Assembly: GCA_965202585.1 (NCBI GenBank)
Contig: OZ241832.1
Coordinates: 49,972,001 to 50,036,000, forward strand
From: Thalia democratica
Lineage: Eukaryota
Reading direction: 5' to 3'
DNA length: 64,000 nucleotides
Below the pieces are notes generated by a model that was not told where the DNA came from, did no database searches, and saw only the letters and a program-made list of their open reading frames with translations. This document shows positions 1 to 51,363 of this stretch, piece by piece. How positions within the stretch are numbered: position 1 is the stretch's first letter; the number at the start of each line of letters is the position of its first letter. The translations under genes and the position numbers were made by a program.

Positions 1-3000
1 CTATTAATGATTTGATGGGCAATAAAGACGACTTGTCTAGTTTCGACAATACTGAAAGGTTTGGTTTATTTTTACAGAAATTGAGATAAATAATTAAGAT
101 AGTTCTATTTTATTCAATAAAAAGTAAGTCATGGCAAAAGTAACTCTTTATTATACTAATTTTACAGAAAATAAACTTTTTTTTTTTGCAAGAACTCTAT
201 ACGGTTTATTATGGTCATTTATATTAAACTAACCTTTAGTTTAGATTTTAAGGACTCTTGTATGATCTGAAAGTATGTTTACAATACCAAACATTTATTT
301 AAAAAAAAATTTAAAATTTTTCAGTTGGTATAGACAGAGTCTAAAAATGCTCTAACTCTTGATGATGGAAAAATATTTTCAACTGTTATATATGATAAAT
401 TGATACTAGATTAATTATTCAAGATTTTTATATGCAAAACTAAGTTTTACCCTTTGAGGGATCTTCAGTTACAATATAAATTTGAAAAATAAAAGTAAAA
501 CAATACATGGAAGATACTATGAAGCAAAACAAAACAAATAAACTAGAAATTGTAAATTATGTTAGTTAGAAAACTAATCAAGAATTTGAATAGAATACTA
601 AATAAACACTATGGGTTTAGTCTGTTAAAAAACTGAATGTGAAACTGCTATATTAAAAAAAAATTAGTGGCTCAAAAGTTAAGGAATAAAGCAAAATGTT
701 TTAATCACAGCACAGACGGTAACACTTCTGCTTTGAGGTTGGAATTGTTGGAAGCTAAAAATTTTGTTTACGACGAGGGCCGATGGCTAATGGCTGATGT
801 TAGTTTCAAACATTTAAATAAAATATTTAGAAAACAGTACTTTTTTTAAAAACAGTAAAATTGTGTTTATATGGTGAAATTTGTGTTTTTATATTGTCGG
901 ATGCCTTGATTTCAGTTTCTAATTTATTACATCTTGTAATAAAAAACTTCCAATAGATTTTTAATCAAATCTATTTAAGCTAATAACATGGTTATAAAGC
1001 TTGTTGTTTCTTTTTTTTTTTAAATTCAAAGATTGCATAATAACAAATCTGTAAAAGGAAGTCAGTTTCAAGTGTTCTACTTTTTGTTACAGGACAGCCG
1101 AATGTACATTTGCAATGAGGAGATCGTTGTGAAAACCGACGACTTCACGTTTTCGCACGTCAGCATGCTGTACGAGAACACTTACAAAATTAAAAACAGA
1201 AGCAGAACCGTATCGGGTGTGTTTTCAACTGTTACTTTTGACAACTTTAGCTTGTACATTTTGAACGTGAGTGTTTTTGTCAAGCGTGAGGTGTGTTTTA
1301 TTGCTGGTCGTTGTAAAGTAAAAAAGATTACAAAAGTTATTTTGGGTAGTTTAACATAATTGAAACAATGCTTTACAGGCTAGAACCTAATATATGTATA
1401 TTTTAAATAATTTTGTTAATCAAAGTGTATAACAATTATACAATATAAAAGTTTAGCTTATGTTTGTGTAAAAAAAGTAAAATCAGTTTTATCTGTAGAT
1501 AACTAGTTTAGTTTTGCTATATTCTTTTAAAGTTGATACTGTATTCAACAATATGTTTGTAAGTTAAAATAATTTCTACAAGTTTCTCTAAAAACTTAAA
1601 AAAATATAAAACGAATACAAAACTATACATTATTTATGAAATTAAGGCTGTATGGGGTCCAACATTATTTTTTACAAAAACTAACATTAGACCTTACGTG
1701 AAAGCTAAAGATACTTTTTACAGAACAAAAGAATACTAATTAACCTTAGATATATCGTCAGTTGTGTAAAAAGTTTCCAATTCAAATGTATGGAGGAAAA
1801 AAATAATACTGCCGATGTTCTAGGAGTTTTAAAAAATCTACTAAATTTTATCATATCCTCATTTTTTAGTCGATAAGCTTAAAATATTCTGGAAATGTTC
1901 CTTACATTAAAACAAAAAACTCTGTTTATAACAATTAAAAAAAGAGTTAAAATTTAAGAATTTTACGACTTAATTTTTTTTTTTCGATAAAAAAATGTTT
2001 TTAGTCAAAATGAAATCTTTTACTAGAAACATGTATCATTAGTTAAGATTAAACTAAGCAAATTACAGGACCATTTCTTGAAAACTGTAGGAGCAGATAT
2101 ATTTTTTATGATATAGTCTTTTTTTTGTCTTTTTACTTTGGTCCTTACATAAAGAACCTACCGAGCTTTCCGACTTTGTACTCTTTTATCTCATAAACAA
2201 ATTTGAATTTTACAAAACGGTAAAAAACAACTGCTAGCTAAGTTGAAGATCTTTAAAATAATATTAAATATTTAAAAAGTGCCTTACCCTTTGTTTAAAA
2301 GCTCGCTAACTTCACTAATAAATTGAACGCTGGTTGTTTTATAAAGCTCTGAAACATTTTAATAAAACTTAATTTCACATACAAATGATTGTTTGTTGAT
2401 TACAGGAAGTTCCGACACGCACGGGGACGGCATACAAGTTGAAGTGGGGGAAAAATGCGAGAAGCACATTTACAAGGACGTTTTCTTCATATCGCTTTCG
2501 TACTGCGCCCACATGATGAACGTCATGCAGTCGATAATGAGCCCCATACAGCTGCCCCATAAGCTGCATCTCAAGTGAGTGTTTTGCATTTTCTCATGTT
2601 TTTAAAAAATTAATAGAGTTTAGTTTAAAAAGTGAGTATCTGAAGTTTATTTTATTATTAAAATGATTTACTTTCAGTTTGCCTTACATGATGAACCCCG
2701 TACAACTGCCTAATAAGCTCAGTATTGCCACAAGGTCAGGAAAAGTCAGGAAACAATGGGGATTTTGAAAAAAAGTCAGGAAAAGTCAGGAAATTTGACA
2801 ATATAAAAAAATCTGATTTTTCAGTTTAAATTTACAAAATTCTTTATTTTCCAAAGCCTCTAAATAAATGGTAAAAAATTAATTAAAAATTCATTAAAGT
2901 CAGACTAAATTGCAAAATTTTCCTAAAAATTTACAAAATTATTTAGTTTCCAATGCGTTCATCTGGTATAAATTAATAAAATATTATTTATAAAACTGCA

Positions 3001-6000
3001 AAATTTATCTGTTAACATATTGAACAACTTACCCTACTTGAACAAGCAGTTTTTGTAAGCTTTTTAGTATTGATGATCTGTAGCAAGGACACTTCCATAG
3101 TAAAACTGTGATATATACTCAAAAGTTTATCTAGCATAATTTTAGAAATCAAAGTGTTTTTTGTTTAAGTAAATAATTGAGGCAACAAAATTGGAGGTAA
3201 AAATAAATGAGTGCAAATATCCTGGTAAATAACTTTCAACACCACCTAAATTCTAAAGGTAAGTAAGTATACCTACTAAGTTTAATTTTACACAATTTTT
3301 TTTAATTAGATAAAACAACCAGCTGTGCTTTTTAATTTTTCAAAAAACACCATTTTACAGACAAGATTTGCATATTTTTTGTGATTATGACTTCATAGTA
3401 CATCAAAAGCAGTTGAATTGTCTTTAAGTGTATGTCCTTAAGTATAAGCTTTCATTTAAGGTATAAATTTATAAGTCTATGACATGTATAAGTGACTTAA
3501 TTACTATTTATGTCAAAAAAACTAAAATATGTAATTTTTGGGTTCAAATCAGTTTTTTCGGGTGCAAGATTGTTTTTTTTTTGCAATACATATTTATTGT
3601 TATCAAATTCTTCTTAATGGAGCTAAATCACATTCGAATCATATGTTTAAATGTAAATTTTACAATATGACCAAAAATTTGCTGTACTTCCTACCCCTAG
3701 TACTATTTTCAATATTTCCATTTGCACATCTAGCAATTTTAACTATGAAACAGTTTGCTTGTTAACTTATAATGATTATTAGAGTATCCATCGTTTATTC
3801 ATGGTTAAAAAATACTTTAGTTCAAATCCTTTTTGCTAATTTATAGATTTTCAAAATTTTTGGATTTAAGATAGTCAATCTTCAAGAGTTTAATTATAAC
3901 TTTTGTATACAAACCAAAAAAAATAATTCATCAATTTATTATAGCTGTAAAATTGTTTAATCTGCATAAATATATGATAAAATAATATAATTATAAAATA
4001 TTTTCTTAAGTTTAGATAAAAACACTATAAATTGTATTTTTAAACGTAAGAGTAATTTTTTGTACAAATATATCACTATCAAAACTGTTTTATATTTAAT
4101 TTTTTTTTGTAGTAAATAATTTAAACACTATTTGATTTATGAAATACAAAACTAGGTTTTTGTAGGTTTATCGTCAACTTTTAATGGTTGTGCTATTTAA
4201 AACAAACCAGTGTAACTGTCTAAACCAGGGGTCGGCAAACTGCGGCCCGCGGGCCACTTTAAAACTTTTATTCAACTAGTTTAATATACTAATATTTTCG
4301 AAAACACAAAAATAAAATTTTAGTGTTATATTTAAAGGATATTCTATCGCCTAAATTTTTTTGTTCAAAAAAAATGTCTTTAAATATTTTATTTAAAGCA
4401 CATAAAAAAACGGTCCTTTTTGACCTGCCGACCCCTCTAAACCTCTTTTTTTGAAACTGAATAGTCAGCATCTAATAGGTTTTCGAGATTAAAAACAAGT
4501 TAAGCTATTTGACACTACTAATACCATGGTTTCTCAAACTAATTTTTATATTTCCCCACTTAGCAGAAGTTTAACAAATAATTACCCCTTTACTGGTGAT
4601 TTGCCAATTTACTTTTATACCCCCTTACTCGAGATTGCCTCCCGAAAGTCGAGCATCGCCTACTTTGGGGAAGCCTGGTTAATATCAAAGCAACCTTTAA
4701 CAACATTTGTCACTTGGCGTATCCAACATTCTATTTATTTTCACAGGACTCTACTTATTTTTATAGGACATGCTACTTATTTTAATAGAACATTCTACTT
4801 TTTTTCACAGAATATTCTACTCTTTTTCACAGGACGTTCTACTTATTTTCACTGGATATTCTACTTATTTTAACAGGACATTCTACTTATTTTAACAATT
4901 TACGAGGACATTCTACTTATTTTCAAAGGGTAACCTACTTATTTTCACAGGAAATTCTACTTATTTTAACAGGACATTCTACTTATTTTCACAGGGTATT
5001 TTATTTATTTTCACAGGACATTCTATTTATTTTCACAGGACATTCTATTTATTTTCACAGGACATTCTACTTATTTTCAAAGGACATTCTACTTATTTTC
5101 ACAGGACATTCTACTTATTTTCACAGGACATTCTACTTATTTTCACAGGACATTCTACTTATTTTCACAGGACATTCTACTTATTTTCACAGAACATTCT
5201 ACTTATTTTCACAGGACATTCTACTTATTTTAACAGGACATTCTACTTAGTTTAACAGGACATTCTACTTATTTTAACAGGACATTCTACTTATTTTAAC
5301 AGGACATTCTACTTATTTTAACAGGACATTCTACTTATTTTAACAATTTACGAGGACATTCTACTTATTTTCAAAGGGTAACCTACTTATTTTCACAGGA
5401 AATTCTACTTATTTTAACAGGACATTCTACTTATTTTCACAGGGTATTCTATTTATTTTCACAGGACATTCTACTTATTTTCACAGGACATTCTACTTAT
5501 TTTCACAGGACATTCTACTTATTTTAACAGGACATTCTACTTATTTTAACAGGACATTCTACTTATTTTCAAAGGACATTCTACTTATTTTAACAGGACA
5601 TTCTACTTATTTTCACAGGAAATTCTACTTATTTTCACAGGACATTCAACTTATTTTAACAGGACATTCTACTTATTTTCACAGGACATTCTACTTATTT
5701 TCAAAGGACATTCTACTTATTTTAACAGGACATTCTACTTATTTTCACAGGACATTCTACTTATTTTCACAGGACATTCTACTTATTTTAACAGGACATT
5801 CTACTTATTTTAACAGGACATTCTACTTATTTTAACAGGACATTCTACTTATTTTCACAGGACATTCTACTTATTTTCACAGGACATTCTACTTATTTTC
5901 ACAGGACATTCTACTTATTTTCAAAGGACATTCTACTTATTTTAACAGGACATTCTACTTATTTTCACAGGACATTCTACTTATTTTAACAGGACATTCT

Positions 6001-8808
6001 ACTTATTTTAACAGGACATTCTACTTAGTTTAACAGGACATTCTACTTATTTTAACAGGACATTCTACTTATTTTAACAGGACATTCTACTTATTTTAAC
6101 AGGACATTCTACTTATTTTCACAGGACATTCTACTTATTTTAACAGGACATTCTACTTAGTTTAACAGGACATTCTACTTATTTTAACAGGACATTCTAC
6201 TTATTTTAACAGGACATTCTACTTATTTTAACAGGACATTCTACTTATTTTCACAGGATATTCTACGAGCACGGCATGTCGGAGAGCGCGTTCACCGCCT
6301 ACTACAAGCTGCTGATCGGCAACATCTGCGCGCTGTGCATGCAGCAGAAGGTCAACGTGACCTCGCCCCACAGGTTCCTCACCAACATGCGTATGCTGGT
6401 GGACAAGATATGCGAGGAGGGATGCTCGTTAGTTATTTCACTCATCAAAGTATTTTAACATAATACGGATGCTCGTTAGTTATTTCAATCATCAAAGTAT
6501 TTTAACATAATACGGATGCTCGTTAGTTATTTCACTCATCAAAGTATTTTAACATAATACGGATGCTCGTTAGTTATTTCACTCATCAAAGTATTTTAAC
6601 ATAATACGGATGCTCGTTAGTTATTTGTTTTCACTCATTAAAGTATTTTAACATAATACGGATGCTCGTTAGTTATTTGTTTTCACTCATCAAAGTATTT
6701 TAACATAATACGGATGCTCGTTAGTACGATCATTTGTTTTCACTTGTGGCTACTAGTTTCTGCATTAAAACTTACTGGTATGATTTTTGTACGTATCTGA
6801 TCTTTTGATGTTTAAAGAGTAAACTACTTAAAAGTTTCTTTACCGTACTTTAAATGGTTTAAATCAAAGTTACGTGTAGCTTGCAAAATATTTATAAATT
6901 TGTACTTGTAATACCCTCTCTAGCAACTTTACATTTGTGTATGTTTAAACTGTAGAACAGAGTTTCTGTTATCTTTTTACTGTAAAATTTATTAGTGTTT
7001 ATAAACAGGGTTAAACTCAATTTTTTTTTTATATGAAGTTAAATTTATGTTAATTTTTCAGTCATGTAATTTATTTAAATTTTTTTAGATCAGGTCCGCA
7101 CAAATACCCGCAAGAGAAGATCGATCAGTGGGAATCGGATTTGAAGTTTCACGAAATAAATGCGGATGACTTGATTTACAACTTCGAAGAAGACGATGAC
7201 GAATCCAGTGGCATTTCGCTCAGAGGGTGGGCGGTCTTCGAATCAGACAAAGACTTCAGACTGTTAGTTCGAACGTTTTTAGTAGATAAAACTTATTTGG
7301 AGTAATAATTTAGAATGCTTTGTTTTTTCATATAATTCCTGCTGCTATCTTATTTTTTTATACTAAAGTTTTATACTTATAAACTGCAATCATTGATAAC
7401 GCATCTTCTAGTTTTCAAAATATCCCAACACAAAGTATCAATTGAACTGTTTTGTAAAACGTTTTATTAATAAATTAGAACATAATTTGTTTATTGCTTC
7501 AAAAGTTAAATAACTATTGATGAGTTGCTTAATCTCACTAAAAAAGTACTTTTTGCAGTTTACTTTTGCAAGATTTACAATTTAAATCAATTTGATTTTT
7601 TACCCTTTTTAACATCTCAATAATAATAAGAACTTTGAGAGTTAAACTTGTCTTGAGGTTAAGTATGCAGTGCTACTTTTACTAATGTGTTTTTTTTATA
7701 AGTAAAGTATTATAAAGTTTAATTAACTAAATACATATTTTCAACAAAAATGAAAACTTAAACTATAGTCCAATTAAGTTTGAAATTATAAGCTTGGTTG
7801 AAATTTGAGTGATGAAAAAACTTATGACTAAGTTAAAAGGTATCCAGTTAAAATTAAGAAAGTTACAAGTTAGTGGGTTAAAATTTTAATTACGTTTGAT
7901 TAAGACTAAACTAAATGTTTGAAACTGTTTTTTATTTGTATACATATATTTCATATTTGATATTATTAGGGGTTAGACCAATAGCTTTAGAAGTAAATTT
8001 ATTGTGAATAGAAAGTACATAAAATCAAAAAAGTTGAAATTTTAAGCAATTTTTAGAGCTTAATAATATTTTTATTAAAGGCGCAAACAAAAAACCCAAA
8101 AAATTGTACTTGTGTAAAATGTTTTTTGCTGTTCCAAATTGATTTTTATTTAGAATTTAATTTCAACTATGTATTATTGTTTAGTTTAGTTTTTTTTGAA
8201 TAGGTTTTTAAAATTGATTCGCATAAATTATTTTTTTTTTGTTCAAAAAATATTTAATACAGTTTGCCATCTCTCAGAACTCAATGTATTAAACTAACTT
8301 AAAACTTGGTAAATTCGCCCTTTTACGGCAAAATACATTTATTATAAAACTTCACTTTTAATATTTTTAATATTAATCGTACAATGGAGCAGTAGCCTTC
8401 ACGATGTACTCCTGTGTACAGTAGTGTGTATAGAAATTAGTTTACTGTGCATAAAACAAAATCAATGTGAAGTAATGTTTTTTACTGGCTATTGTTTTGT
8501 CTTTTTCTAATTAAACAAGATAATTTTAAAATAAGTGATGAGTACTTAAAGAAGTATTAAGGTGAAAAAGTTCGTTCCTTATACTTTTTGTAGCCTTGTG
8601 TTCACAACTTCTGAAAATGACCACTACACATAAATAATAGAATTTATGCGTTCAACTTCCGTTTAACTGAATATTATTCAGATTGAGTCCACCAACGTCG
8701 CTATACAGCAGAAACATGGATCAATCGACCAGCATCGTGTCTTCAGCTCTTTCTACATTGTCCTACCTCGGCAAGATGATGATGTTTTCCAACAATAACG
8801 AGCAATAA
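1..8808 (+). CDS. 3' part of an unidentified multi-exon protein-coding gene. Exons <1-58, 711-798, 1093-1216, 2406-2574, (2678-2734 optional), 6257-6427, 7089-7262, 8682-8808 (TAA)
   Basis: All introns are GT-AG and the phases chain correctly (2,0,1,2,2,2) into one open frame: ..INDLMGNKDDLSSFDNTESTDGNTSALRLELLEAKNFVYDEGRWLMADDSRMYICNEEIVVKTDDFTFSHVSMLYENTYKIKNRSRTVSGSSDTHGDGIQVEVGEKCEKHIYKDVFFISLSYCAHMMNVMQSIMSPIQLPHKLHLKIFYEHGMSESAFTAYYKLLIGNICALCMQQKVNVTSPHRFLTNMRMLVDKICEEGCSSGPHKYPQEKIDQWESDLKFHEINADDLIYNFEEDDDESSGISLRGWAVFESDKDFRLLLSPPTSLYSRNMDQSTSIVSSALSTLSYLGKMMMFSNNNEQ*. Exons are GC-richer islands in AT-rich introns. Protein family not recognised. Confidence 0.85.
2678..2734 (+). CDS. 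Candidate 57-nt frame-preserving cassette exon, (N)LPYMMNPVQLPNKLSIAT(R), resembling the end of the preceding exon
   Basis: TTTACTTTCAG acceptor at 2677 and AAG|GTCAGG donor at 2735. Phase 2-2, open in the gene's frame. The peptide resembles IMSPIQLPHKL of exon 2406-2574. Its last ~16 nt overlap the apparent start of a repeat element. Confidence 0.4.
2719..2860. mobile_element. End of a non-autonomous DNA-transposon-like repeat (CAGGGTTGCCAC-like terminus, GTCAGGAAAA subrepeats)
   Basis: CAGTATTGCCAC followed by four GTCAGGAAA motifs. Similar termini occur at 49115 (CAGGGTTACCA), ~54150-54163 (GTGGCAACCCTG) and ~54361-54374 (GTAGCAACTCTG). The other end was not found. Confidence 0.4.
4226..4436. 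mobile_element. hAT-type MITE
   Basis: Left terminus CAGGGGTCGGCAAACTGCGGCCCGCGGGCC and right terminus CTGCCGACCCCT are inverted copies. Flanks GTCTAAAC / (T)CTAAAC look like a partly eroded 8-bp TSD. Confidence 0.7.
4525..4677. mobile_element. Short hAT-type MITE related to the elements at 10318 and 48625
   Basis: Termini CATGGTTTCTCAAA ... TTTGGGGAAGCCTG. Flanks ACTAATAC / GTTAATAT form a degenerate 8-bp TSD (5/8). Confidence 0.55.
4728..6266 (+). repeat. 22-bp minisatellite, ~70 copies, unit ACAGGACATTCTACTTATTTT(C/A). The last unit is the real 3' splice site of exon 6257
   Basis: Period 22 read directly (ACAGG at 5101, 5123, 5145). The terminal copy TTATTTTCACAG|GATATTCTAC runs into coding sequence. 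A longer variant block (TTTAACAATTTACGAGG...GGGTAACCTAC...GGAAATTC) occurs twice, near 4890 and 5340, showing a higher-order duplication. Confidence 0.97.
6420..6725 (+). repeat. 47/52-bp tandem repeat (4x47, 2x52, plus a terminal partial unit). Each unit begins with the exon's donor GGATGCTC|GTTAGT
   Basis: GGATGCTCGTTAGT at 6420, 6467, 6514, 6561, 6608, 6660 and 6712. The first copy overlaps the coding exon end at 6427. Confidence 0.96.
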
Positions 8809-10317
8809 CTAATGAATAGTTTTCAAACTTTAGTAACTTAAAAATATCAGTTTAAACTGTGCTCTTTGTTCAGGCGCTTTAAAGTCCTAGTTATGGTGTA
8901 AGCCAATTCAAAAACCAATAATCAATAATATTCACTTAAAAAAGTTTATAGTTTTATTAAGTATAATTAAAAACTTCAAACTCTGCTTGATTCTAAAGAC
9001 TGTTTCATATTTGAATTGTAGTTTATTTTTTAGCAAGTGTTAAATCACAACATAAAAGCCTTTTATTTTTCAATATACTTCTTCCAATAATTAAGGGGTG
9101 AGAAAATAATTTTGTTAAGGAAGAATATAGATTTATACCACTATCAAATAAAGGTACAGTTTTTTAGATCAGCTATTTACTAACCTTTTTTATTTATTAA
9201 ACCAATTTTATTGCAGTTAAAAACTAATAACAGCTTACCGACAAAAATATATCATTTATTCTTTAGAAGTAAACAAATTTTTCTACATTAAAAAAAATTT
9301 TTTTTCTATTACTTTTATAAGGAGTATAAAGTTAAATCAATAGTTCAAAACTAAAAAAGTTTTTTACTGCCTTAGCCAAATAAGAATTTACTTTTTCTTT
9401 ATCTTTAAAATGATCATATTTATAACAAATAACTTTTTACTTATTTTTAATTTAAGGGCTTTATTATTTTTCACTTTTTAATATTTTGCACTTAAACCAA
9501 GATTTTTTGTATAAATTTGGGCTGCATCTTTCAAATCAAAATTATGTTTTAACTAAGTTAAAATTTATATAACAAAAGTAAGCTTTAATTAAATTAATTT
9601 TTTTCTCAAAAAATTTTTAGCATGTTTTTTTGTTAGCTGTCTTCTTTTTTCTTTGTACATTTTAACTTCAGGTACTTTTTTTGTCCATATTTTACTATGG
9701 ACCATCATTTATATAATTTTGTCCTTTATATAAAATGCAATAAAATATAGTTCTTATAATATCTTATTAAGAACAACAGTTTTTGTAACAACAGTTTTGA
9801 ATAAAATGAAGCATTTCATTTTTTCTAAAAACTCACTACATTTACTCTCACAAAAAATAACTTTTAAGATATTTATGTTTTTCTAGTTTTTTCTATTCAT
9901 ATTCGTAAATGTACTTACTTAAATTTCAACATTAAATTATTATCTTATCAAAAATTTAAGCTTTTTGAACATATCCAAGCACCATGTTTTAATCAGAGTA
10001 CAAGTGAAGCTTATAGAACTAACTAGTTGGTAAACAGATTTGACAAACTGTTTTCACCTAAAATGCATCGCCTACATGTCATGTGGCAATCAATTTTAAA
10101 AGGAATTTATCAATCTAAAATAGTTACTTTATTCTTAATTCCAACTTACTAAGTTAGATCACGGTCAATATATTTTTTTGTGTTTTTTCTTCTTATAGAA
10201 GTAAAAATACTAAAATCACTAATTGTAGTTTACAATGACTATATAATTGCATTTAATCTTTTAAAACGTTATATTGTTTTTTTTCAAACAAAAGTATTTA
10301 AAAAGTTCTGTTTAAAC

Positions 10318-12271
10318 AAGGGTTTCCTAAATTCATTTACTAAATCGCCCCCTATTCATAAATAAAAAAAAAAAATTCCCCCCTCCCCTCCCATGATATT
10401 ATACAGTAATTTTTCTCTTGAGTACGCACTTTTGAGTTTTAAAAATTGTGTTTGAAATATAATTTAGACTGGTACTTTTTAGGAATGCACTTTTTGGCTG
10501 TGTTCAAAGTAATTTAAAGGGTTTGAGAAAATAATTTGCAGTTATTTTATTGTAAGCTTGGTAAAGTGTTTTAAAATACTTAATTATTAAAAAGCCTTTT
10601 GTATTCTGTAATAAATTCTGTTTAAATATGAATTGTTTTGAAACTAATGAACCGTTTAGGTTAGTGGTGGACAGATTTTTTAGTAGTAGGTCAGATTTAC
10701 TAAAAAATTATTTATCGTGTCGACTTGTTAAAAAAATGTACTGGGGTGCTGCTTAATTTAAAATCTAACATATAGTAAATTTTAAAAACTCGAGCAAAAT
10801 TGTAATAAAATTATTAGTATTAGTGTAATAAAGTGCTATTGGGAACTGAAAACCAAATTGAAAGCGCATTTCAAAATATCAAGTATCAAAAAAACTAAAT
10901 TTTATTTGTTTTGCACAAGTAGTTTTCAAGTTACTTAGTCGGCCGAAATTTGACTGGACCGTACGTTACCCATCTGAAATCTTAACTGAAACCTGACATT
11001 ATAATAATCTCTGATGTAACGAGCTTCGCACATTTAGTAGTTAATGCTAAGTAACTAGTGGCTCAATATACTTTAATTATTGTGATTATCAAATACTTAT
11101 AATAGCAACTAATTTGCATATACACTACCTAGAAATGGATCAAAATTGCACGAGGTTATTAAACTGCACAAGGTTATTAAATTGCGCGAGGTTATTAAAT
11201 TGCGCGAGGAGACTAAATTGCACGAGAACAAAATTGCACGAGGATAAATTTGCACGAGGGTACAAAACTGCACGAGGGAACAAAATTGCATGAAGACAAT
11301 TTTGCACCATGGGTCAGTTTTGCACGAGTTACATTTTTGCAGTAGAGTAAAAAAAAAACAGAAAAACAAAAATAAAAAAAAGGTACCGACCGAGGGTTTG
11401 GGGTAACAGTGATAAAAAAAATAATGATTAAAAAAAAAAGTTACCGACTGAGGGTTAAGAGTAGAAGTGATAGCAGAAAAAAAAACTAAAAAAAAAGATA
11501 TAAACAAATAAAAATTTAATTTATGCAAAAAAGTCTCCGTGCAAAAGTGTCTTCATGCAATTTTGTGCACTCGTGCAATTTTGTACGTTCGTGAAAATTG
11601 GACAGCTACCCACACTACCTATACTTAAAATATTTAACTACCATGTGAGTACGTGATAATTAAAATACACTTTTTTTAATTTTGTAGTGCAAACTCAAAA
11701 ACAAAATATTGATTTTAAAAAATAACTTACAAAATATAACTTAATTAATAACAATTACTTTTTTATTCTATAGAAAAATTTACTTAAATATGTTTTTTCT
11801 TTTAGTCTAACTAAGTGACTTTTCAAAAAACAATTGGAAATATCAAGAGGTGATAGTTTAAAATAGATAACATAGATTTTTTTAAACAATTTATGATCCC
11901 AAATAGCATATATGCCAGGTTATGAAATGGTGAGAGGGGTTCTATTCATCTATGACTTATGTAGTTGTTAAATGAAAAAAAGATAGGAATAAAAATATAC
12001 ATTTTATTTGAAAATAGTAGTCCTAAGCACTAAATTTTTTTCTGTATTTTACGTAAACAAAATGGACTTTTTTTTAAAGTTCTTATTTCCTTAGGGTCAA
12101 ATATTCAATAACAAGCTACAATTAGTTTAAAAATTACCTACAATTTAGAAAGTAAAAATTTTATAACTGCCTAAAATTTTGAAATCGCCCCCCACCCCTT
12201 TACTAGTTATTGCCCTCGACTTACTAAAATTGCCCCCAGGGGGACGGTACCGCCCACTTTGGGAAATCCTT
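10318..12271 (-). mobile_element. Non-autonomous hAT (Buster/Charlie-like) element, inverted relative to the copy at 48625, with a nested insertion
   Basis: TIRs AAGGGTTTCCTAAA / TTTGGGAAATCCTT. 8-bp TSD GTTTAAAC (10310-10317, 12272-12279) with central TA. Internal segments (10920-11000, 11810-11970, 12180-12271) match the reverse complement of parts of 48625-51363. Confidence 0.85.
11131..11611. mobile_element. Mutator-like non-autonomous element nested in the hAT element
   Basis: Perfect 9-bp TSD ACACTACCT (11122-11130, 11612-11620). Both ends are built of inverted arrays of AAATTGCACGAG-like subrepeats. Confidence 0.75.
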
Positions 12272-12389
12272 GTTTAAACCATTATAACTGTGAAACAATT
12301 AGAAAAACAAAACGTCTTTGATATTTCAAACTGAAATTAAAGATATAAAAAGAAAGAACTACGAAGAAAATTAAACTATCAATTTAAAC

Positions 12390-14542
12390 GGGTGGGTGTC
12401 AGAATGGCACAGCGATACTTTAGCACGGTGGGTAACGTTTACACGGCGTCATTTTAGTACGGTGCGTCACTTTTACACGGCGTCATTTTAGCACGGTGCG
12501 TCACTTTAGCACAGTGGGTCACTTTTTCACGGTGTATTACTTTAGCACAGTGTCACTTTGTCACGGTGGGTCAATTTTGAACGGAGCGTTATTTTTGCAT
12601 GAAATAAAGCTTTTCAATAGGAGGTTCTATGAAACTTTTTATTCAACTGCTAAAAACTATATGTTAAATATCTAAAATTGTAGGAATTTTAATCTTGAAG
12701 TAAGATTTTTTTAATTTGTCCATTAGTTTTTTAAGAAAAACTTAACTTTATACTTTTTAGTAGTAATAGTTTTAACTTTTTAACACTATTTAGTATCAAA
12801 CTAAAAATATTAAAGTGTGTTGCTTAGTAGTTATATACATTCTAAATAAGTAATAGGATAGAACAAATAATATAACAACTAATAAATACGATAATATTTT
12901 TGTTTTAATTAAATGAAAGCTAAGATAGTTCAAAACTTTGTAAAGAAAACTCAGAAATCAAAGTAGTAAAACTGTTTAAAAACAAATCAAAATATGTTTT
13001 TAAAAACTGTTTTAGTGTATTCTTATTTACTGATTTTGTAATTAATGTTTAATATTTTTTAATTATTTATATCATATGGTAATATAATACTTTAAAAATT
13101 CTAAAATGTTAATTTATTTAGGCTAGAAAGTTTAGTAAAACTAAGAAAAGCTTTTAAGTATTAACCCTATTTAATTTTATTGATCCCTATAATTTAATTA
13201 AGTTGACCAAAAAACTTGAAAACTTTATACTGTATTTTTTGAAACAACTTTATTTTTTCAAGTATTGAGTTTAATTTCATACAACATAAATTTGTTTTAG
13301 ATTAGATGTAGTCTGTGTTTTTCAACGTGACAATAAATTTTTAAACTTTTATTTTTAAGTAAGTTCTTAAAAAAACGTGTTGATTTATAGAAATTTTGCA
13401 CTATAATTGTTCTTACTTTTTATTAATAAAAAAACCGTTAAAAAAAAAAAAGTTATAAAATATGTAATTTAGAATGTTTTCTAACACAGCATTTGTATTT
13501 TTTAAGACGTTTCAATTCTAAAAACTCTGTAATTGTTGATAACAATTCTTGCAGCAAGTAATTAATTATTTAACGTTTATTTTTCATTGCATATTCTTAA
13601 ATGACATCTATGATTTTAGTTTTACTATTTATGCAAAATTTTCGTTATAAGCCTTTTATCCAATATATAAACATGAAAAGCGGTGAAACGTAAAAAATAA
13701 GGAGTTTTAGAATTCTTTATGTGTGTATAAATGTTATCTATGAACTTGAATTTTAAAGTTTTTAAAACTAATGTGTTAAGCAACTGTAATTTTAAAACAT
13801 AAAAATAAGTTTTTTGTTTTAATATTTAACATCAAAACGCAAAACAAAACAATTAAAGATTTGATTTCAGAAGTAAATTTAACTTTCTTTTTATGTTTGT
13901 AATATTTTTACTTTATGAAATTGAACTTGAGTTACTCATAAATTGTTTTAATACCTATGCCAGTATAACTCACTACATGTTTATAAAAATATTTTTAAAT
14001 ATGTAGTGTTAGCTTAATATTTATAATTATATTTGTTTTTTTAAATTTAGCTATATATACTTTTAGAAAGTTGTCAAAAAAATACATAGTATTACATCGA
14101 AATTAAAAAAAAAATTCCAAAATAAAGTTATAAATAAAATTTAAGTGTTTTACGATTCTAATGCCATTCATTACTTTTAATTTTAAATTTAGTTTTTAAA
14201 AACGTGTTTTACATACTACAGAGGTCTTAATAATTATAGTATAAAATGTATTATCGAAAAATTTTCAAATGGAGGTTTAAAAAGATTTAGCTTGTGCAAA
14301 ACAACGCTCATTCCGAAAAAAAAAAGATAAAAAAGACTCTTCAAACAAAAACAAAGTAGAAAAAACTGCAAAAATGACGCTCGGTAAAAAACTGACGCCC
14401 CATGTAAAAGTGACCCGTAGTGCTAATGTGACGAACCGTGCTAGAATGACGCCCGGCTAAAGTGATGTCGTACAAAAGTGACGCACCGTGCAAAAGTGAC
14501 TCACCATGCCAAAGTGACGCCATGCTATTCTGACCCGCTCCC
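12390..14542. mobile_element. ~2.15-kb foldback/MULE-like non-autonomous element with ~200-bp TIRs made of tandem subrepeats
   Basis: Left arm GGGTGGGTGTCAGAATGGCAC...(TCACTTTAGCACGGTG)n matches the reverse complement of the right arm 14350-14542 (GGGAGCGGGTCAGAATAGCATGG...). The interior is AT-rich with no ORF. The 9-bp flanks match only 6/9. Confidence 0.75.
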
Positions 14543-16628
14543 ATTTTAATAGGGTCAGCCTATTTTAAGTCGATGATTAGTTTTCTTAAAAAAGCTCGTG
14601 TTCTCGCAAGCCGCAGTTTATAGATAAAAGTCTTCCATGGGCCGCAGTTCTTAAAGCAATTTTAATAGCCAATATGAAAAACTTTAATGTATCAAAGTAT
14701 GATAAAATAAGTAACAATAGAGCACTAGTAACAATTAACTAACAAGTTCAGAGCAAAATTGTAGATTTTTTACTACAACCAAAAAAGATTATATTTAATA
14801 AGTATGACTTTTGTTATAATACCTGGCTTGCCGCAATTTCCTAACTTTTAGTTAGGGAGTATCCAGCAGAATAACAAATAAATTGGCTATGAAAAGTGTT
14901 TGATCTTCAAGTACAATAGTATTTTTTTTTGACGAAAAGATAAAACCAGCTGATTCCAAATGTGATATTTAAATAAACGACTCTTAAAAACTTATATTAT
15001 TCTGAAAAATGTTTTTCAGGGCCCAGATCCGGGCTAGTCATTTTCACTTCAAGGATCTTTCTCGCAGGTCGTATGTAGCCCATACCAAGTTTATTTCCTC
15101 GTCTTTTGTTTCATAGTAAAATATAAATTGTAGAACTTTTTATAGTTTAAAAAACATTGTAAGTAAAATAGCCAAGTTTTAGCCATTGGAACAGTGTTTC
15201 TTTTCTGGAACATTTTAATTATTTATGTTTTGCTGATTCTAAAATCTTGAAAACTATCTAAATCTAGCTTTGTACTAGTTTAGTTTATAAAATGTTTAGA
15301 TGTTCAAATATATTTAAGCTTAATGTATTTCCTTTTTTTAATTTTCAAAATAAGCTTTTTTTTTGTGAAATTTATTAATTTTTGTACACTATTTAAATTG
15401 TTGCATTACTTAAACCTTTCTATTTGATCTACTAGCTACCTTAGTTAATTTATTTTTTTTATAATAAAATTTTAATACTTGATATAATGAAATGATATTA
15501 AACAAATACTTTAAGTTTAGAACATGAAAGAATTGAAAATGCAAAATTTTATATATCTCTATTAAAAGTTGTTATAGAAGTTGAACCAATCTTATAGTAA
15601 TCTAACATAAGGATACCTCAGTACAAAAGCCTGCCCTTGTCTAATATTATTAAAGAAGAAACTGATAGTATTCCAGTATACATATAAATAATCTAACATA
15701 TATATGTACAATTATTATAGCAAGATAAATCGCCTAAAGTTTAACACTTTTATAAATTTATAAAGTTTATAGTGTAACATATTAATAAACTACTAAAAAG
15801 TAAACAAGTAGCTAATTTATTTTATATATATATATATTAATATGAATTTAAACTACTCTAGAGTTTGCGTACAACAGTTAATTGGCATGGCACTCTAAAA
15901 AATAGAAATAAAAGACTTCTGTTGTTACTAAGTACTTAAAAGTAGACATTAAAACCATCAAAAAATACACAAATTAAGTCTGTTTATTTTAAGTAAACAT
16001 ACCTCCGTCTTTTGAGGCAAACTTATTTGTTTCTACAAACCTGAAAATATTTTATCTAAAAGAATAACGTTTCTGATAAAAAACTTTGAGTTTTATTACA
16101 AAACTTTAAATGTCAGTAAAGTAAATAATTTAAATTATATTTTTATTTCAAATTATTGGCTTCGACTGCGTAAGTTGTCAGGCTTTTTTTTTTGTATTTT
16201 ATTAAATTTATTTTAGATTCATTATGTTCTAGAGTAAATAAGTATTTTGACAACAATCAAACCTTTATTCATAGAATATTTTTTTCGATAAAAAAACTAA
16301 TTCTTTTTGCTTTATTATTTACCGCCATAATAACTTGATTAATAAAAACCTAGTAAAAACGTTATCAGTTTAGTACATGTTTTAAATAAGAAAACTTTTT
16401 AAAATTTATTTGTTAGAAAATTAACTAGCTACAATACTACAATTTACATGAGTTTATTTAATTCTGAAACTATACACTTATCAACCCAAAATACTAGAAA
16501 GTACCTTAAAAAGATAATCAATCTCCTATGTTTATAAAAAAACATTTTAAAGCATATTACAAAAAAAAACAAGAGTTAGAGCATCAATTAGCATAGCTTC
16601 AAAAGTACTGATGACTAAAACGTTTTAT

Positions 16629-19600
16629 CTAGTTTTTGGGAGTATAGTTGTCGGCACATGAGAATCGTTTGCAGCTAAAAAACTTTTCTATGGTCGCTTC
16701 ATCTACGTTCTCTCTATTCTTTTGATGATTTGCTACAAATGCTTGAAGTACTTCAATCAGACGTTTCTTGAGTTCTCCCGATAAAAGTTCTCCTTTAGCA
16801 TATGCCTAAAATTAATATGAAGATAGATTTATAAATTTTATAAAAAAAAATTAACTAATGACATTACTTTGAAATTATCTACCATGTTTAAAAGTATACA
16901 TCGTTACTAACAGCTTTAATTTTTTCATATTCTTCATCATCGTCTAAGAAGAAATTAAGATATTTAATGCACACATCAACTTCAATATTTCCTCCAAGTT
17001 TTCGGTGCAATTCAACTGTATCTTGGCCTCCACTGAATGCGTACTTATTAATCTGTATAAAATTTTTTAAAATCATGTAAATCACTTATATATCAAAGTA
17101 AATAACTAAGAATACTTTTAAATAAGATCCAGTTAGAATATTACGTTAAACTAAAATAAAATGAAAAATAATTTTTTTGAAGTAATACCTTGGTTTTTAT
17201 TTGTTGGGGAGTATCAGTGAGAAATATTCCGCTGTTTTCATCTGAAGCACTCATTTTAGAGACGGCTCCTTGCAATGCCGGAAAAAATACGGAGTGAATC
17301 AACGCAGGCTTTTTGAATCCTAACGTTGGTGCATAATGCCTTGTCAAGCGGAAGTATGGATCCTAAAATAATTGAAAATAACTAATTAAGTAAAGTTTAG
17401 TTTAGAAACTTTGATGTTATGTTAGTTTGTTCTTCGATGATAGTGCTATAGATAAGCTACTATCATATGCATACACATATACTTTGCTAGATGCATTGAG
17501 CTTTTAAGTAAAATGATTTAATGAAACTAATAAAATTAATAAGTTCTAATTTTTAAAAGGTCTTAATTATAAATAATATTACATTTTTGCCCTTTTTAAA
17601 ATAGTTGATAAGACCTAGATAAGTATTTGTAGAAGCAATAACAAATAAAAATTATTTTTGATACTAAATATGTAAAATTAAAATAGACTCAGTTTTCATT
17701 AAGTAAAATTTTTTTAATTAATAGTTTTATAGCGTTAAACTTGTGTAAACATATTTTAAAACTCATCATAAACCGACTGTTTGAGCAATTGAATATAATT
17801 AAAAACTATCAGTTTTTAATATTACCAAATTAAACTTATATAAATAACAAAATGTTTGGACATTACCTGATCAATAGCGCATGGAATGAGGCATTCCACG
17901 TCTCTACATCCGTTAAAAATGTGTGGAAAACTGGAAGAAAATGAAGGGCAAGCTTGCACTGGTGGAAAACTTACTTGTCCTAGAATAAAATTTATTTATT
18001 TTTAATTAGTGATAAGTATTTTCAAAAATAAAAAAAATAAATATATGTAAAACTATACTTTTATATGTATTGTTCTATAATAAGAGTTTAAACTTTTTAA
18101 TTCAACTACTTAAAAATACGTTGTTTATCTGTTTTAGATTGAATTAAAACTTTTAACTAACCAATATTATTATCTCCCTCGAAGCCGAAGCAGCCTTTTA
18201 CTTGATTTAATGTGACAGCCTTTTTAAACTTGATAATATTCTTAAAGAATTCTTTTCTGTAAGCATGAATTATTTTTATTTAAACTTAAATGTTTATGCT
18301 TACTATTAATTTTTATTTTAATTTAAAATTGTTTTTATAAGCGTTTCAAACATGTTTTAATAAATAGATTTCACTATTTATAAACATTTCCTTTTCAAAT
18401 GCAAAAATTAAATAGTTACTTACCCATGTCCCTCAGTTATATATTCAACATCAGTAAAAATAAAAGTTTTGTCCGGGTCAAATCCGCACGCGATAATATC
18501 TTTGGCGTTTGCGTAAGCTAAATCGGTGTAATCATCAAGGTTCTTGCCGTCTTTGAAGAAAAACTTTTTATCATCAGTCATCTGGATGACTAAAGGCACA
18601 TCAAACACTTTCTGAAGCCATCTGGTATAAAGATAACTAGTAAAAACTTGTTCCGAAACTTGCAGTTTTAGTGTGTTAAGTGTAAAGTTTAGTAGTAACA
18701 TAAAAGGCTGAGTATAATTAAAAGAAAACAACTTAATAAAAAGCTTAAACTATAAAAAGTACGTTTTGAAAATATTATTTCTAAACATTAAAAAACACAT
18801 TTAATAATTGTGTATTAATTAGTGTGCAACTAACTGAGTGAACATGAAATGAACCATATGACCAAGATGCATGGCAGTAGATGAAGGTCCACGTCCAGTG
18901 TACAAATAAAAAGGCTTCCCAGCTATGTAGTTCGTTAACACTTGATCCAGTTCTCTTAATGAAAAATTATGATAAATCAATAAGCTTTTTAAAAAATGTT
19001 AAAACTTGCAAACAGAGACACTTATTAGATATTTGTTTTAGTAATATTAGCAATGCAACACAAATTTTCCGTAGATAACTCAATACTTTTATGGTAAGTT
19101 ATGATCAACTACAATTACAGAAAATAGATACATTATTTTTAGAATAATAAAAAAAATATGTTTTTAAAATTTCTATCCTATAATTTTTATACTGATGTTT
19201 TTAAATTATTTTATGTTTGTTAACTAATAATAAAAACTTATGAGAAAAAAATATTTTTCTTCTAAGAAAGGTATGCATTTTCATAATCTTTTTGTCAAGA
19301 ACTTCTTGAAATTTTTGTAACACATCTTCACTAATTCTTTCTGATCCAAACTTAACTGAAAATTATACTTTTTATTTTTATTCATGCTTATAACTATTAA
19401 GGTTTATTAAAAGTTAAGTCCGGTAGATCATTTTTCTAAAGTTTTTAACTTAAGACGTTCCTCTAATATAAGACCTAATTAATGATGATAAAACAGCAAA
19501 ATATCTGGTTAACGAGTAGTAGTTAGACAAAAAGTTTAATGATATCTAGTAAAGTGATTAAATTGTTTTAACTGTTTAGTTTAAAAAGATTTTTCATTAA

Positions 19601-48225: not shown

Positions 48226-48624
48226 TTTTGTCGTTTATTAAATAACATAAGCTGAATATCTTTAGTTTGTAGCTTTAGTAGGATAAACTTTGATTTTTTT
48301 TAATTTGTAGAGCAGTGATTGTCAAGCTAATAAAAATTTGTGTACACTAAACTACAATAAACAAAAGCGGTGCACACTAAGATCTAGTTTTAATAAATGC
48401 CGCAAGTGGAGGGGCTACGTAAACACTTTTATCAGTTAATTTCTCCACATTTCCGAACTGAATTTATATTTACATTAACAAACGAAGCTGAAATTTATTA
48501 TTTGAACTTTTTAATATTTCTATTGATCTTTATATTTGGTGTACCCTATTTCCACAATGATATTTTATTTATCTAGCATTGTCTTACATAACTATTATTA
48601 AACACATCTCTGCAATCACTACAC

Positions 48625-51363
48625 CAGGGTTTCCCAAAGTGGGCGATATCGCCCCCCTGGGGGCGATAATTAGTAAGGGGGCGAAAGGGTGGGCGATAAC
48701 TAGTAAAGGGGCGAAAAGGGGGCGATTTTAAAATTTTGGGCTGTCATAAAATTTTTACTTTTTTTCTTGCTATGTTACTAGTTTTAGCTTGCTATTAAAT
48801 ATTTGACCCTGAGATAAAACTTAAACAAAAAAGTTTATTTTTTTTATGTAAAATATAGAGAAAAAAATCAAGTACTTATGACTCCTATTTTCAAGTAAAT
48901 TACATATTTTCATTTATATGTTTTGTTATTTGACAATTACATAGATCATAGACGATCGGAATCCCTCTCACCACTTTATAACCTGACATATATGTTATTT
49001 GGGATCATAAATGGTTTGTAAAATTCTATGTTATCTATTACCAACTATCACCTCATGATATTTTCAATTGCTTTTTGAAAAGTCACTAAGTTAGACTGAG
49101 AAATAAAACTATACAGGGTTACCAATTTACCTAGAAACCTGGAAAAAACTGGAATTTGACAATTTAGGCAAAAAAAACCGTAAAAAATCTGGAATTATTA
49201 ACAATTTCAACATATTAAATAGTAAAATTCTGATTTGACACAAAAAAGCTACCCTTTAGATAAAAATATGGATTCCTTCAAGGCAGATCTTTTTGAAGTA
49301 AACGACTTACAGGAAACCTTCTCAGACTTACAAACTAACCTTGAACTTAAAGTAAATTTTTCCAAAGAACGATATGAAAGCTTTTGGAATAAACAAAAAA
49401 TAAGGCAAAAGTATCCAATCATTTGAGAGGAATTTAGATTGTTGTTTATAGTTTTTCCTTCTAGCTATGTTGTTGAAAAAACTTTCAGTTCATTATCAAC
49501 ATCTTAAGCAAAAGATCTAATCTAGATATTTGTAAAGGAGGCTTTATTTTACTGATTAAGAACTAAATTAAAAAAAACTTGCATGCAGTAATGAAGCTCA
49601 TCCTTTACATTATATTAGACTTAAGTAGCAGACATTATTTTATGAAAGTTTATTTATTTTTTTTTGATCTTTTAAAATACTTCTTATTTAACCTGGTTTG
49701 TAATGTATTTTAAAAGTCTTTTTATAATAAAAAAATTATTAAGTTAAGTATTCTACAACAGGTTTGAATAATGCCTAATAAATGTTAATTACGGTAGACT
49801 TCCTCTTGAGTTCGCACTTTTTACCCAAAAAAAGAATGCAAATTTATATTTTCTTAAATTTAATTTAAATAAAGTCTTTTACTAACTAAGTATTGATAAA
49901 ACAAAAAATACACAATATTTGATATTTTATATAGATTTATTTTTTTTATGAATGTTCTTTTTAGGTTTTAGTTGATTTCATATTTATTCATAACGCTATT
50001 GCATATAACATATTTAATTTTATCACTTTGTAAATAAAAATGTTAATAATTTTTGAGTTTGCACTTTTTTATTTTGTTCAAAGTTCGATTTCAAGCGGAA
50101 GTCTACTGTATTTATTAGACGGCATATGTTTTAAATCTGTTAATAGTTTTATTTTGACCTGGTTAATTTTGTAGTTTATATTTGTCGTTTTATATTACAC
50201 TAAAATGTTTTATAGCGTAGTGATAAAAGTATTTGTTTGAAAGAAATTTATTTGACATATTTTTGTTATCACTTGTTTAATCTGTAAAAATAAAAAAATC
50301 TTGATAATCATTAAATTTTTATTTCAAATTTTTTTTTTGGTTTTAAAAGAGTATAGATTTGAAGTCTCTATTTGAAATGACTTTAAATTTTTCATTTAAA
50401 AGGTTCTTAAACTCAATTTTATTTTTTAACTTGATTTATTATTGTTAAAAAATCAATATATCAAGGAATTTTAAACTCTTAATAAAACTGTTTTTTGTTT
50501 TATCTCAATTTTTAATATATTAATAATTAGAATATGTTTTTTTTTTAATAGCTCAACACTAGTTTTTGGTTTTTCACTACTTCTGGTAAATTATTACTGG
50601 CTAATAACTAACGGCTTAATTAAGTTACTTAGTATTAACTTTTAAATGTGCGAAATTCTTTATATGAGAGATTATGAAAATTTCAGGTTTCAGTTAAGAT
50701 TTCAGATCGGTAACGTACGGTAAGATCAAGTCAAATTTCGTACCGCTAAGTAACTTGAAAACTACTTGTGCAAAAAAAAAAAATTTTTTGATACTTAATA
50801 TTTTGAAATACACTTTCAACCTGGTTTTCAGATCAATAAGTATTTCCTAGATCACATAAATACTAAATCATTTTATTACAATTTTGATCGAATTTTTTGA
50901 TTTTCTTATATGTTATTTTATAAAATTATTCAGCCCGCAATAACATTTTTTTAACGAGTTGAAACTAGAAAAGATTTTTAAGTAAATATGAATTGCTGGT
51001 TACAAAAGTTGCCCACCACTACCCTAAAAGTTTGATTAGTTTTAAAACAATTCATATTTAAATAGGATTGATTACAGATTACACAAGGCTTTTTAATAAT
51101 CAAGTATTTTAATACACTTTACTGGGCGTATAAGAAAACAACTGTAACTTATTTTCTCAAGCCCTGTAAACTACTTTGAATACAGCCACAAAAATGCTTG
51201 CATAAGAAATACTAGACTAAAATACATTTCAAACACAACGTTTTTGGCTCAAAAATTTGTACTCAAGAGAAAAACTACTTTGTAAAATCGTGGGGTTGGG
51301 GGGCGATTATTTTTCAAATTTCTGAAAAGGGGGCGATTTAGTAAATGAGTTTGGGAAACCTTG
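48625..51363 (+). mobile_element. Defective hAT DNA transposon of the Buster/Charlie group (2739 bp)
   Basis: TIRs CAGGGTTTCCCAAA / TTTGGGAAACCTTG. Perfect 8-bp TSD CACTACAC (48617-48624, 51364-51371) with the central TA typical of Buster-type targets. GGGGCGA subterminal repeats at both ends and a transposase remnant inside. Confidence 0.9.
49235..49612 (+). pseudogene. C-terminal remnant of a hAT (Buster/ZBED5-like) transposase dimerization domain
   Basis: ...ESFWNKQKIRQKYPII*EEFRLLFIVFPSSYVVEKTFS..(frameshift)..KRSNLDI...EAHPLH matches the hAT FPSxYxxExxFS motif and the Buster-like H-P-x-H terminus. Contains a stop and frameshifts. Confidence 0.75.

Follow-up and report, generated by a model that had tools for sequence, protein, structure and literature searches.

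Minisatellites spanning both splice junctions of a single exon of an ATG14 orthologue in Thalia democratica

The window analysed here is a stretch of 64,000 nucleotides from the marine animal Thalia democratica (assembly GCA_965202585.1, contig OZ241832.1, positions 49,972,001 to 50,036,000 of the forward strand), and it carries an ATG14-like gene, one exon of which is flanked by two tandem arrays. The units of the array upstream of this exon, called exon B in the following, contain a copy of its acceptor, and those of the downstream array contain a copy of its donor. The features of the locus, in window coordinates, are the following:

End near 56–58: further upstream exon, seen in RNA contigs
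709–798 and 1093–1215/6, plus strand: upstream exons with GT..AG joints in RNA contigs
2406–2574, plus strand: exon A, with donor GTGAGT and an RNA joint from 1215/6 to 2405/6
4585–4690, plus strand: old dispersed-repeat (transposon-like) block just upstream of the acceptor-side array, retained in a relative
4725–6256, plus strand: acceptor-side minisatellite of 69 units, mostly 22 bp, from sequence reading, Tandem Repeats Finder (TRF) and unit parsing
6227–6232, plus strand: TTTTAAC of the penultimate unit, which is of the A type; a candidate branch point read from the sequence with the yUnAy consensus
6257–6427, plus strand: exon B, a 171-nt exon of the ATG14-like gene with a GC content of about 58%, both ends set by RNA contigs
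6420–6750, plus strand: donor-side minisatellite with units of 47 bp (four) and 52 bp (two) and a partial, diverged seventh copy
7089–7262, plus strand: exon C, with donor GTTAGT; RNA contigs have loose ends at 6427 and 7089
8682–9239, plus strand: last exon, coding up to a TAA stop at 8806–8808 and followed by the 3' untranslated region

Exon B encodes the peptide IFYEHGMSES...DKICEEGCS, opens on the third base of one codon, closes on two bases of another and is present as a single copy in the genome. The intron between exon A and exon B has a length of 3682 nt and holds the 22-bp array, and further downstream a single contig piece covers 7177–7262 together with 8682–9239. The exon B peptide itself gave weak matches at the right position both to the Pfam ATG14 family (E = 0.045) and to residues 337–383 of human ATG14 in the PDB (E = 1.2), and a search of the protein atlas with exon B alone as query was uninformative. 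Using phmmer against the full library, exon B retrieved the full-length proteins P0002 (E = 5e-8) and P0003 (E = 6e-4), and a profile built from the proteins found in this way matches human ATG14 (Barkor) over residues 75–406 with E = 1.5e-19. Thus, the host gene is an ATG14 orthologue (PF10186 family), and exon B is part of its conserved C-terminal half. N-terminal CxxC repeats are present in P0003, and the N-terminal exons of the host gene are either beyond the window or missing from the reconstructed model. At position 6392 within exon B the assembly has a T and all four runs that cover it (two RNA, two DNA) have a G, a synonymous third-position difference that is private to the assembly.

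The locus had been pointed out before by a model that saw the letters only, and this sequence-only reading described about 70 copies of an acceptor unit upstream of exon B, differing from the true site by a single C>T. Parsing the units backwards from the acceptor we counted 69 of them in 4725–6256, followed by 10 nt running into exon B, and TRF reports a 22-bp array at 4726–6266 with 90–94% matches. Each unit combines 12 nt of acceptor with 10 nt of exon start, namely an exon-start copy, GACATTCTAC, and the stretch TTATTTT[C/A]ACAG comprising a pyrimidine tract and the AG. While GACATTCTAC opens 51 of the units, exon B itself opens with GATATTCTAC. An AG stands at the end of 68 of the 69 units, with the endings TCACAG (n = 30), TAACAG (n = 28) and TCAAAG (n = 6), and the decoy acceptors are identical to the real one from −12 to +2 and show one C/T difference, at +3, as had been claimed. 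Upstream of the real acceptor there are 68 well-formed and nearly identical 3' splice sites, all of which combine a pyrimidine tract and a branch-point-like motif with an AG followed by G. The most diverged units are the distal ones (4725–5016), which show up to 4 changes or changes in length, and the proximal two thirds of the array consist of near-uniform units. The array also contains a 448-bp internal duplication (4877–5016 vs 5325–5464) with 97–99% identity.

In general, branch points follow the consensus yUnAy. Read with this consensus, the penultimate unit contains the candidate TTTTAAC with a putative branch A at 6231, which would be located 25 nt upstream of the real AG, and the unit's own AG (6233–6234) is probably too close to this A for use. 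The same TTTTAAC recurs in all 28 A-type units, and every unit of the array carries a branch-point-like TTTTAAC or TTCAC, with 3–4 nt between this motif and the unit's own AG and about 25 nt between it and the AG of the unit that follows.

The donor-side array was detected by TRF as a 47-bp array at 6420–6725 with 6.3 copies and 96% matches. Four 47-bp units begin at 6420, 6467, 6514 and 6561, two 52-bp units follow at 6608 and 6660, and the unit at 6712 is partial. The last 8 nt of exon B, GGATGCTC, directly followed by GTTAGT, occur seven times, the number given in the earlier reading, if the real donor is included; the GT of the six extra copies starts at 6475, 6522, 6569, 6616, 6668 and 6720, and throughout the first four units the donors agree without a difference from −8 to +39. 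A genome-wide search found neither the 22-bp unit nor the 47/52-bp unit anywhere else in the 802-Mb genome, and local alignment of the two edges of exon B with the adjacent intron gave scores of 19.5 and 20, compared to 5–8 for inverted or reversed controls. As the units are unique to the locus and the scores are far above the controls, the arrays are not a product of chance. The two kinds of unit had been proposed to derive from unrelated sequences, which stands only in part: the 10-mer TATTTTAACA and the motif TTATTT(T)CAC are common to both (rough chance estimate 0.02–0.05), and otherwise the units are unrelated. The shared sequence may be branch-point-like or pyrimidine-tract-like, or it may go back to a common history.

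In order to look at the origin of the arrays we could make use of a 1655-bp metagenome contig from a related species (L010), which is the source of the best phmmer match, the mis-called open reading frame P0001; a scan of metagenome contigs yielded no further related genomic loci. The contig contains the end of exon A, an intron of 961 nt (compared to 3682 nt here) and an exon B that is also 171 nt long, is 82% identical and differs at 18 of 56 third codon positions. Two acceptor copies are found 18 nt apart (TTTTCACAGGAC at 971 and 989). Of three donor copies, the one at 1161 is the real donor, the one at 1371 reads GGATGCTCGTTAGT and follows a stretch that is homologous to the 47/52-bp unit, and the one at 1433 is decayed. 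As the relative carries extra copies at both junctions, both junction-spanning duplications predate the split of the two species, and the proposal that each array was seeded at an exon boundary is borne out by these two acceptor and three donor copies, which are located at the same junctions. In our window, the unique sequence that borders the array on its upstream side (about 4637–4724) aligns to the sequence directly upstream of the acceptor in the relative, showing that the 1.5-kb array is an expansion in this lineage, and the growth to 69 and to 6–7 units is lineage-specific. Between its real donor and the first repeat unit the relative has about 140 nt of sequence that is richer in GC (1183–1320 of the contig); this stretch is absent from the window and may be an insertion.

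The dispersed block at 4585–4690 has kin at 12148–12320 and at 48560–48745 (minus strand) and belongs to a dispersed family with the core ...CCCCTTTACT...ATCGCCCACTTTGGGAAACCCTGG. Its copy in the ATG14 intron is orthologous to positions 875–950 of the relative's contig, and the element is therefore older than the species split. The block is conserved in the relative, and it identifies the acceptor-side array as an insertion with respect to the ancestral intron.

The direction of copying can be read from the protein. At the position of the Ile of exon B two of three orthologues have Thr and the third has Lys, and the Gly-Cys-Ser/Leu at the end of the exon is largely conserved in the orthologues. 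Since the exon residues within the repeated parts are conserved in this way, the exon came first and the arrays were copied from it. The array consensus GACATT retains the Thr codon, indicating that the T of exon B at 6259 is derived, and one old distal unit (4833) reads GACGTTCTAC, as does the exon of the relative.

For the use of the sites we relied on assembled contigs of two marine metatranscriptome runs (X1 and X2), representing one environmental sample at steady state, and runs X7 and X9 gave nothing usable over 1–4900. The contigs join 2574 to 6257 and 6427 to 7089, that is, they use the innermost acceptor and the innermost donor, which confirms the boundaries of exon B. A contig over 6257–6418 carries the terminal letters of exon A before 6257, the exon A contig continues behind 2575 into the start of exon B (ATATTCTACGAGC...) and contigs ending at 6427 go on into the start of exon C. 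The assembled contigs of X1 and X2 include none with a junction between exon A and a repeat unit or between a decoy donor and exon C. Over 6558–6756 the RNA depth is 0 (X1) and 0.5 (X2), compared to 22–80 for the contigs of exon B, and it is thus about zero although the repeat would amplify any read-through about six-fold. The acceptor-side array is represented by one 99-nt contig of X1 with a depth of 2.4, which is intron background given that its words are repeated tens of times. Near-zero array depth and the lack of any decoy-junction contig show that the decoys are essentially silent at steady state. Elsewhere in the intron between exons A and B, the RNA contigs of X1 and X2 are deep over the stretches 2625–3280 and 4100–4430, reaching up to about 1660 and showing many variants; these are probably expressed dispersed repeats and not part of the ATG14 transcript.

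The reading frame agrees with this use of the sites. There are 71 AG sites in 4700–6256 including the real one, and with splicing from exon A the normal C-terminus is reached only from 6257, many of the A-type units giving an immediate TAA if used as acceptor. All six decoy donors run into one shared TAA located 13 codons past exon B, and skipping of exon B would keep the frame at the cost of 57 conserved residues. The earlier statements that decoy donors read into an in-frame TAA, that the A-variant acceptors contain a TAA and that full-length protein results only from the innermost pair are therefore all in line with the frame analysis, and for the last one also with the RNA contigs, which use exactly this pair.

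The locus is best explained by tolerated, silent minisatellites that were seeded by duplications of exon boundaries, with the choice of the splice sites anchored on the exon, and we assign this explanation a probability of roughly 0.62. It started with two old and small tandem duplications, each spanning one splice junction of the same ATG14 exon, the acceptor seed comprising 12 nt of intron and 10 nt of exon and the donor seed 8 nt of exon and about 40 nt of intron. As a duplication spanning a junction leaves an intact junction beside the body of the exon it would be tolerated, and unequal exchange or replication slippage could then have enlarged the two-copy state to 69 and 6–7 units in this lineage. 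The spliceosome uses the exon-adjacent acceptor and donor only, and for the donor this agrees with the rule that has been shown for human F7, in which the first of several identical 5' sites, the one furthest upstream, is selected. For the acceptor, TTTTAAC of the penultimate unit is well placed for the real AG and 27 others are placed equally well; as each unit carries both a branch-point-like motif and an AG, local signals cannot single out the last acceptor and the choice must come from the context. We infer that branch point and AG would be chosen from the exon side through exon definition, based on the GC-rich exon body and the nearby donor 171 nt away, and not by first-come use of the intron in 5'-to-3' direction. 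The additional sites are silent at steady state and would be neutral passengers. In this scenario the seeding at both junctions, the growth in this lineage, the use of the innermost sites and the effects on the reading frame are shown by the data, and exon definition and neutrality are our inference.

Several points weigh against this explanation. The numbers of 69 and 6–7 units come from one assembly, and short-read contigs break at the arrays, so that they offer no check on the count of 69. Contigs from one sample miss rare isoforms and nonsense-mediated mRNA decay (NMD) removes decoy-spliced RNA, so that the silence of the decoys holds at steady state only and is to be read as an upper bound on their use and not as proof of absence. 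The first decoy donor of the relative matches the unit of our window at 14/14 positions, although third codon positions have diverged by about 32%, which is weakly suggestive of constraint (p of about 0.05 by a rough estimate). Finally, with a minisatellite density of about one per 7–9 kb and 150,000 exons, the latter being our own assumption, a crude neutral estimate predicts about one exon per genome with arrays at both junctions, and far fewer in the approximately 10 Mb scanned. The co-occurrence is thus unusual, but no special mechanism is required to explain it.

Alternatively, the arrays might be regulatory decoys that catch splicing events and lead to frameshifted or stop-containing mRNAs degraded by NMD, with the copy number or a factor coating the repeats setting the output of ATG14. 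In a variant of this model the repeated 5' sites recruit U1 and the units with branch point and pyrimidine tract recruit U2AF/U2, both strengthening the definition of exon B. The identity of the acceptors with the real site from −12 to +2 and of the donors from −8 to +39 fits such a role, as do the premature stop that follows from every decoy, the persistence of copies at both junctions since the split from a fairly diverged relative (including the 14/14 identical donor copy) and the low-depth array contig in the RNA library X1. However, no decoy junction was found among the contigs, the donor array has almost no RNA depth and the depth of the acceptor array stays within the intron background despite words repeated tens of times. 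Moreover, the contigs of exons A, B and D are similar in depth, and the relative manages with two to three decayed copies, so that large arrays are not needed for exon B. Taken together, we regard the two versions of this model jointly as unlikely. The sequence-only reading is thus confirmed in what it observed and supported in part in its interpretation, the tuning of productive versus NMD-bound mRNA by copy number having no support so far.

The locus could also be an extreme outcome of a process acting throughout the genome, in which exon edges and splice sites are copied into the adjacent introns, for example by repair or template switching triggered at the boundary. A general duplication mechanism anchored at splice junctions had also been considered in the sequence-only reading, and both junctions of one exon being affected, with both seeds being old, would agree with it. 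The donor of exon A has a weak possible echo about 55 nt downstream with a score of 11.5, compared to 6–7 for the controls; the sequences in question, AAAAAGTGAGTATC vs CTCAAGTGAGTGTT at 2628–2641, could also be similar by chance. We compared 64 other exon edges (50 from myosin-head exons, 6 from MIB_HERC2 and 8 RNA-confirmed edges from the ATG14 gene) with 700 nt of adjacent intron by local alignment. No excess of direct copies over controls was seen at these edges: the mean scores were 8.8 for direct, 8.6 for inverted and 8.8 for reversed alignments (Wilcoxon p = 0.43 and 0.95), with a lower sensitivity for edges taken from profile matches, which are not exact exon edges. Likewise, a scan of 27 myosin-head exons at 15/18 matches gave 4 direct and 3 inverted matches, and none of nine other junctions tested in the ATG14 gene showed a copy above control. 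An array beside a myosin exon (L027) was rejected as an echo, as it is T-rich low-complexity sequence. A genome-wide process is thus quite improbable, and the general mechanism did not show at the other edges.

Least of all do we expect the arrays to be real but much shorter and inflated in length by the assembler. The copy number does come from one assembly, the short-read contigs of the other runs break at both arrays and the 448-bp duplication is 97–99% identical, but the ordered variant structure of the array with its decayed distal edge, and a summed array depth several-fold over that of single-copy sequence, make such an artefact very improbable. Furthermore, DNA contigs of the runs X3 and X5, which are labelled as two organisms and are about 1% different from the window, start at 6229/6231, exactly at the first 31-letter word with the exon-specific T, as is expected only if the words upstream are repeated. 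They resume at 6680/6711, and both stop at 6438, just before the base separating the 47-bp from the 52-bp unit type, which hints at haplotype differences in the first downstream unit. The summed array depth relative to single-copy depth differs between the runs and is, together with the stops at 6438, at most suggestive of copy-number polymorphism.

Other origins or functions were rejected. A dispersed satellite or transposon tail as source of the units does not fit with both units being confined to the locus, and the transposon-like block is older and stops about 35 nt short of the acceptor-side array. The idea that the two arrays pair with each other and thereby loop out or circularise exon B was dropped, as no inverted repeats linking them were found, and a structured or known RNA was rejected after an Rfam search of 1–16000 without a match and an ordinary fold of 6147–6520 (z = −0.19).

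The most similar case known is the 37-bp variable number tandem repeat (VNTR) in intron 7 (IVS7) of human F7, in which the first unit spans the exon–intron boundary and the real donor is followed by 5–9 identical pseudo 5' sites (Borensztajn et al. 2006, PMC1557585). There, splicing takes place only at the donor next to the exon, which is the one furthest upstream, and the pseudo-sites are functional but silent (PMC1557585). The 47/52-bp array shares with it the junction-spanning first unit, the identical pseudo-donors and, as far as assembled contigs from one environmental sample show, the exclusive use of the exon-adjacent site, and at exon B the units span the junction on both sides, the 22-bp unit including 10 exon nt and the 47-bp unit 8. 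In contrast, F7 has an array on the donor side only whereas exon B also has the 69-unit array at its acceptor, two of the F7 pseudo-sites would keep the frame and none does here, and F7 was tested experimentally whereas the locus of the marine animal is known from sequence and contigs. Thus, the donor array belongs to the F7-type class, and the acceptor array of 69 units and the pairing of both arrays on one exon are new.

Tandem duplications of splice junctions have also been linked to intron sliding and new introns, for example by Lehmann et al. 2010 (PMC2891723). They resemble our locus in being short duplications across a junction with one working and one spare intronic copy, and they differ in having two copies and in being discussed as a way to create or move introns, whereas here the arrays are long, the intron position is fixed and exon B has 171 nt in both species. 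Artificial constructs with duplicated donors and acceptors were made in gamma-globin, as cited in PMC1557585. Finally, the so-called spl-TRs are intronic VNTRs associated with splicing variation (Genome Res 2023, PMC10078293). They have in common with our locus that a tandem repeat within an intron could in principle influence splicing nearby through its length, but the reported links are statistical and mostly concern repeats without splice sites of their own.

Apart from the ATG14 gene, the window contains on the minus strand (16600–42200) a tryptophanyl-tRNA synthetase gene in five copies that are arranged in tandem and recur about every 5.8 kb, the open reading frames of their C-terminal exon being located at 16632, 22451, 28230, 34041 and 39850 and some copies having altered frames. 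A very high-copy repeat at 10140–12100 (also 12419–12599 and 14367–14520) reaches a summed word depth of 4e4 to 2.7e5 in X3/X5, compared to 60–100 for single-copy sequence, and holds 18-bp arrays (AAATTGCACGAGG...); a second pair of 18-bp arrays in inverted orientation is found at 12419–12599 and 14367–14520.

How the spliceosome chooses among identical neighbouring sites is still debated, and the VNTR of F7 has been a key natural model, although for donors only. The ATG14 locus is its mirror, with a very large acceptor array in addition to a donor array at the same exon and with a relative that keeps the starting state of two to three copies. It makes it possible to test whether the acceptor choice is anchored on the exon, whether silent pseudo-sites come at a cost through NMD and how junction-spanning duplications are tolerated and expand. 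It is also a warning for gene prediction, as the automatic call P0001 in the relative read straight through the repeats and the intron. It could also be, which we consider rather unlikely, that in this animal the exon side dictates which acceptor is chosen, in place of scanning or first-come use of the intron, and that the arrays at the same time bleed a share of ATG14 that depends on their copy number into NMD. If this bleeding were true, the arrays would represent a heritable and fast-mutating dial on the initiation of autophagy.

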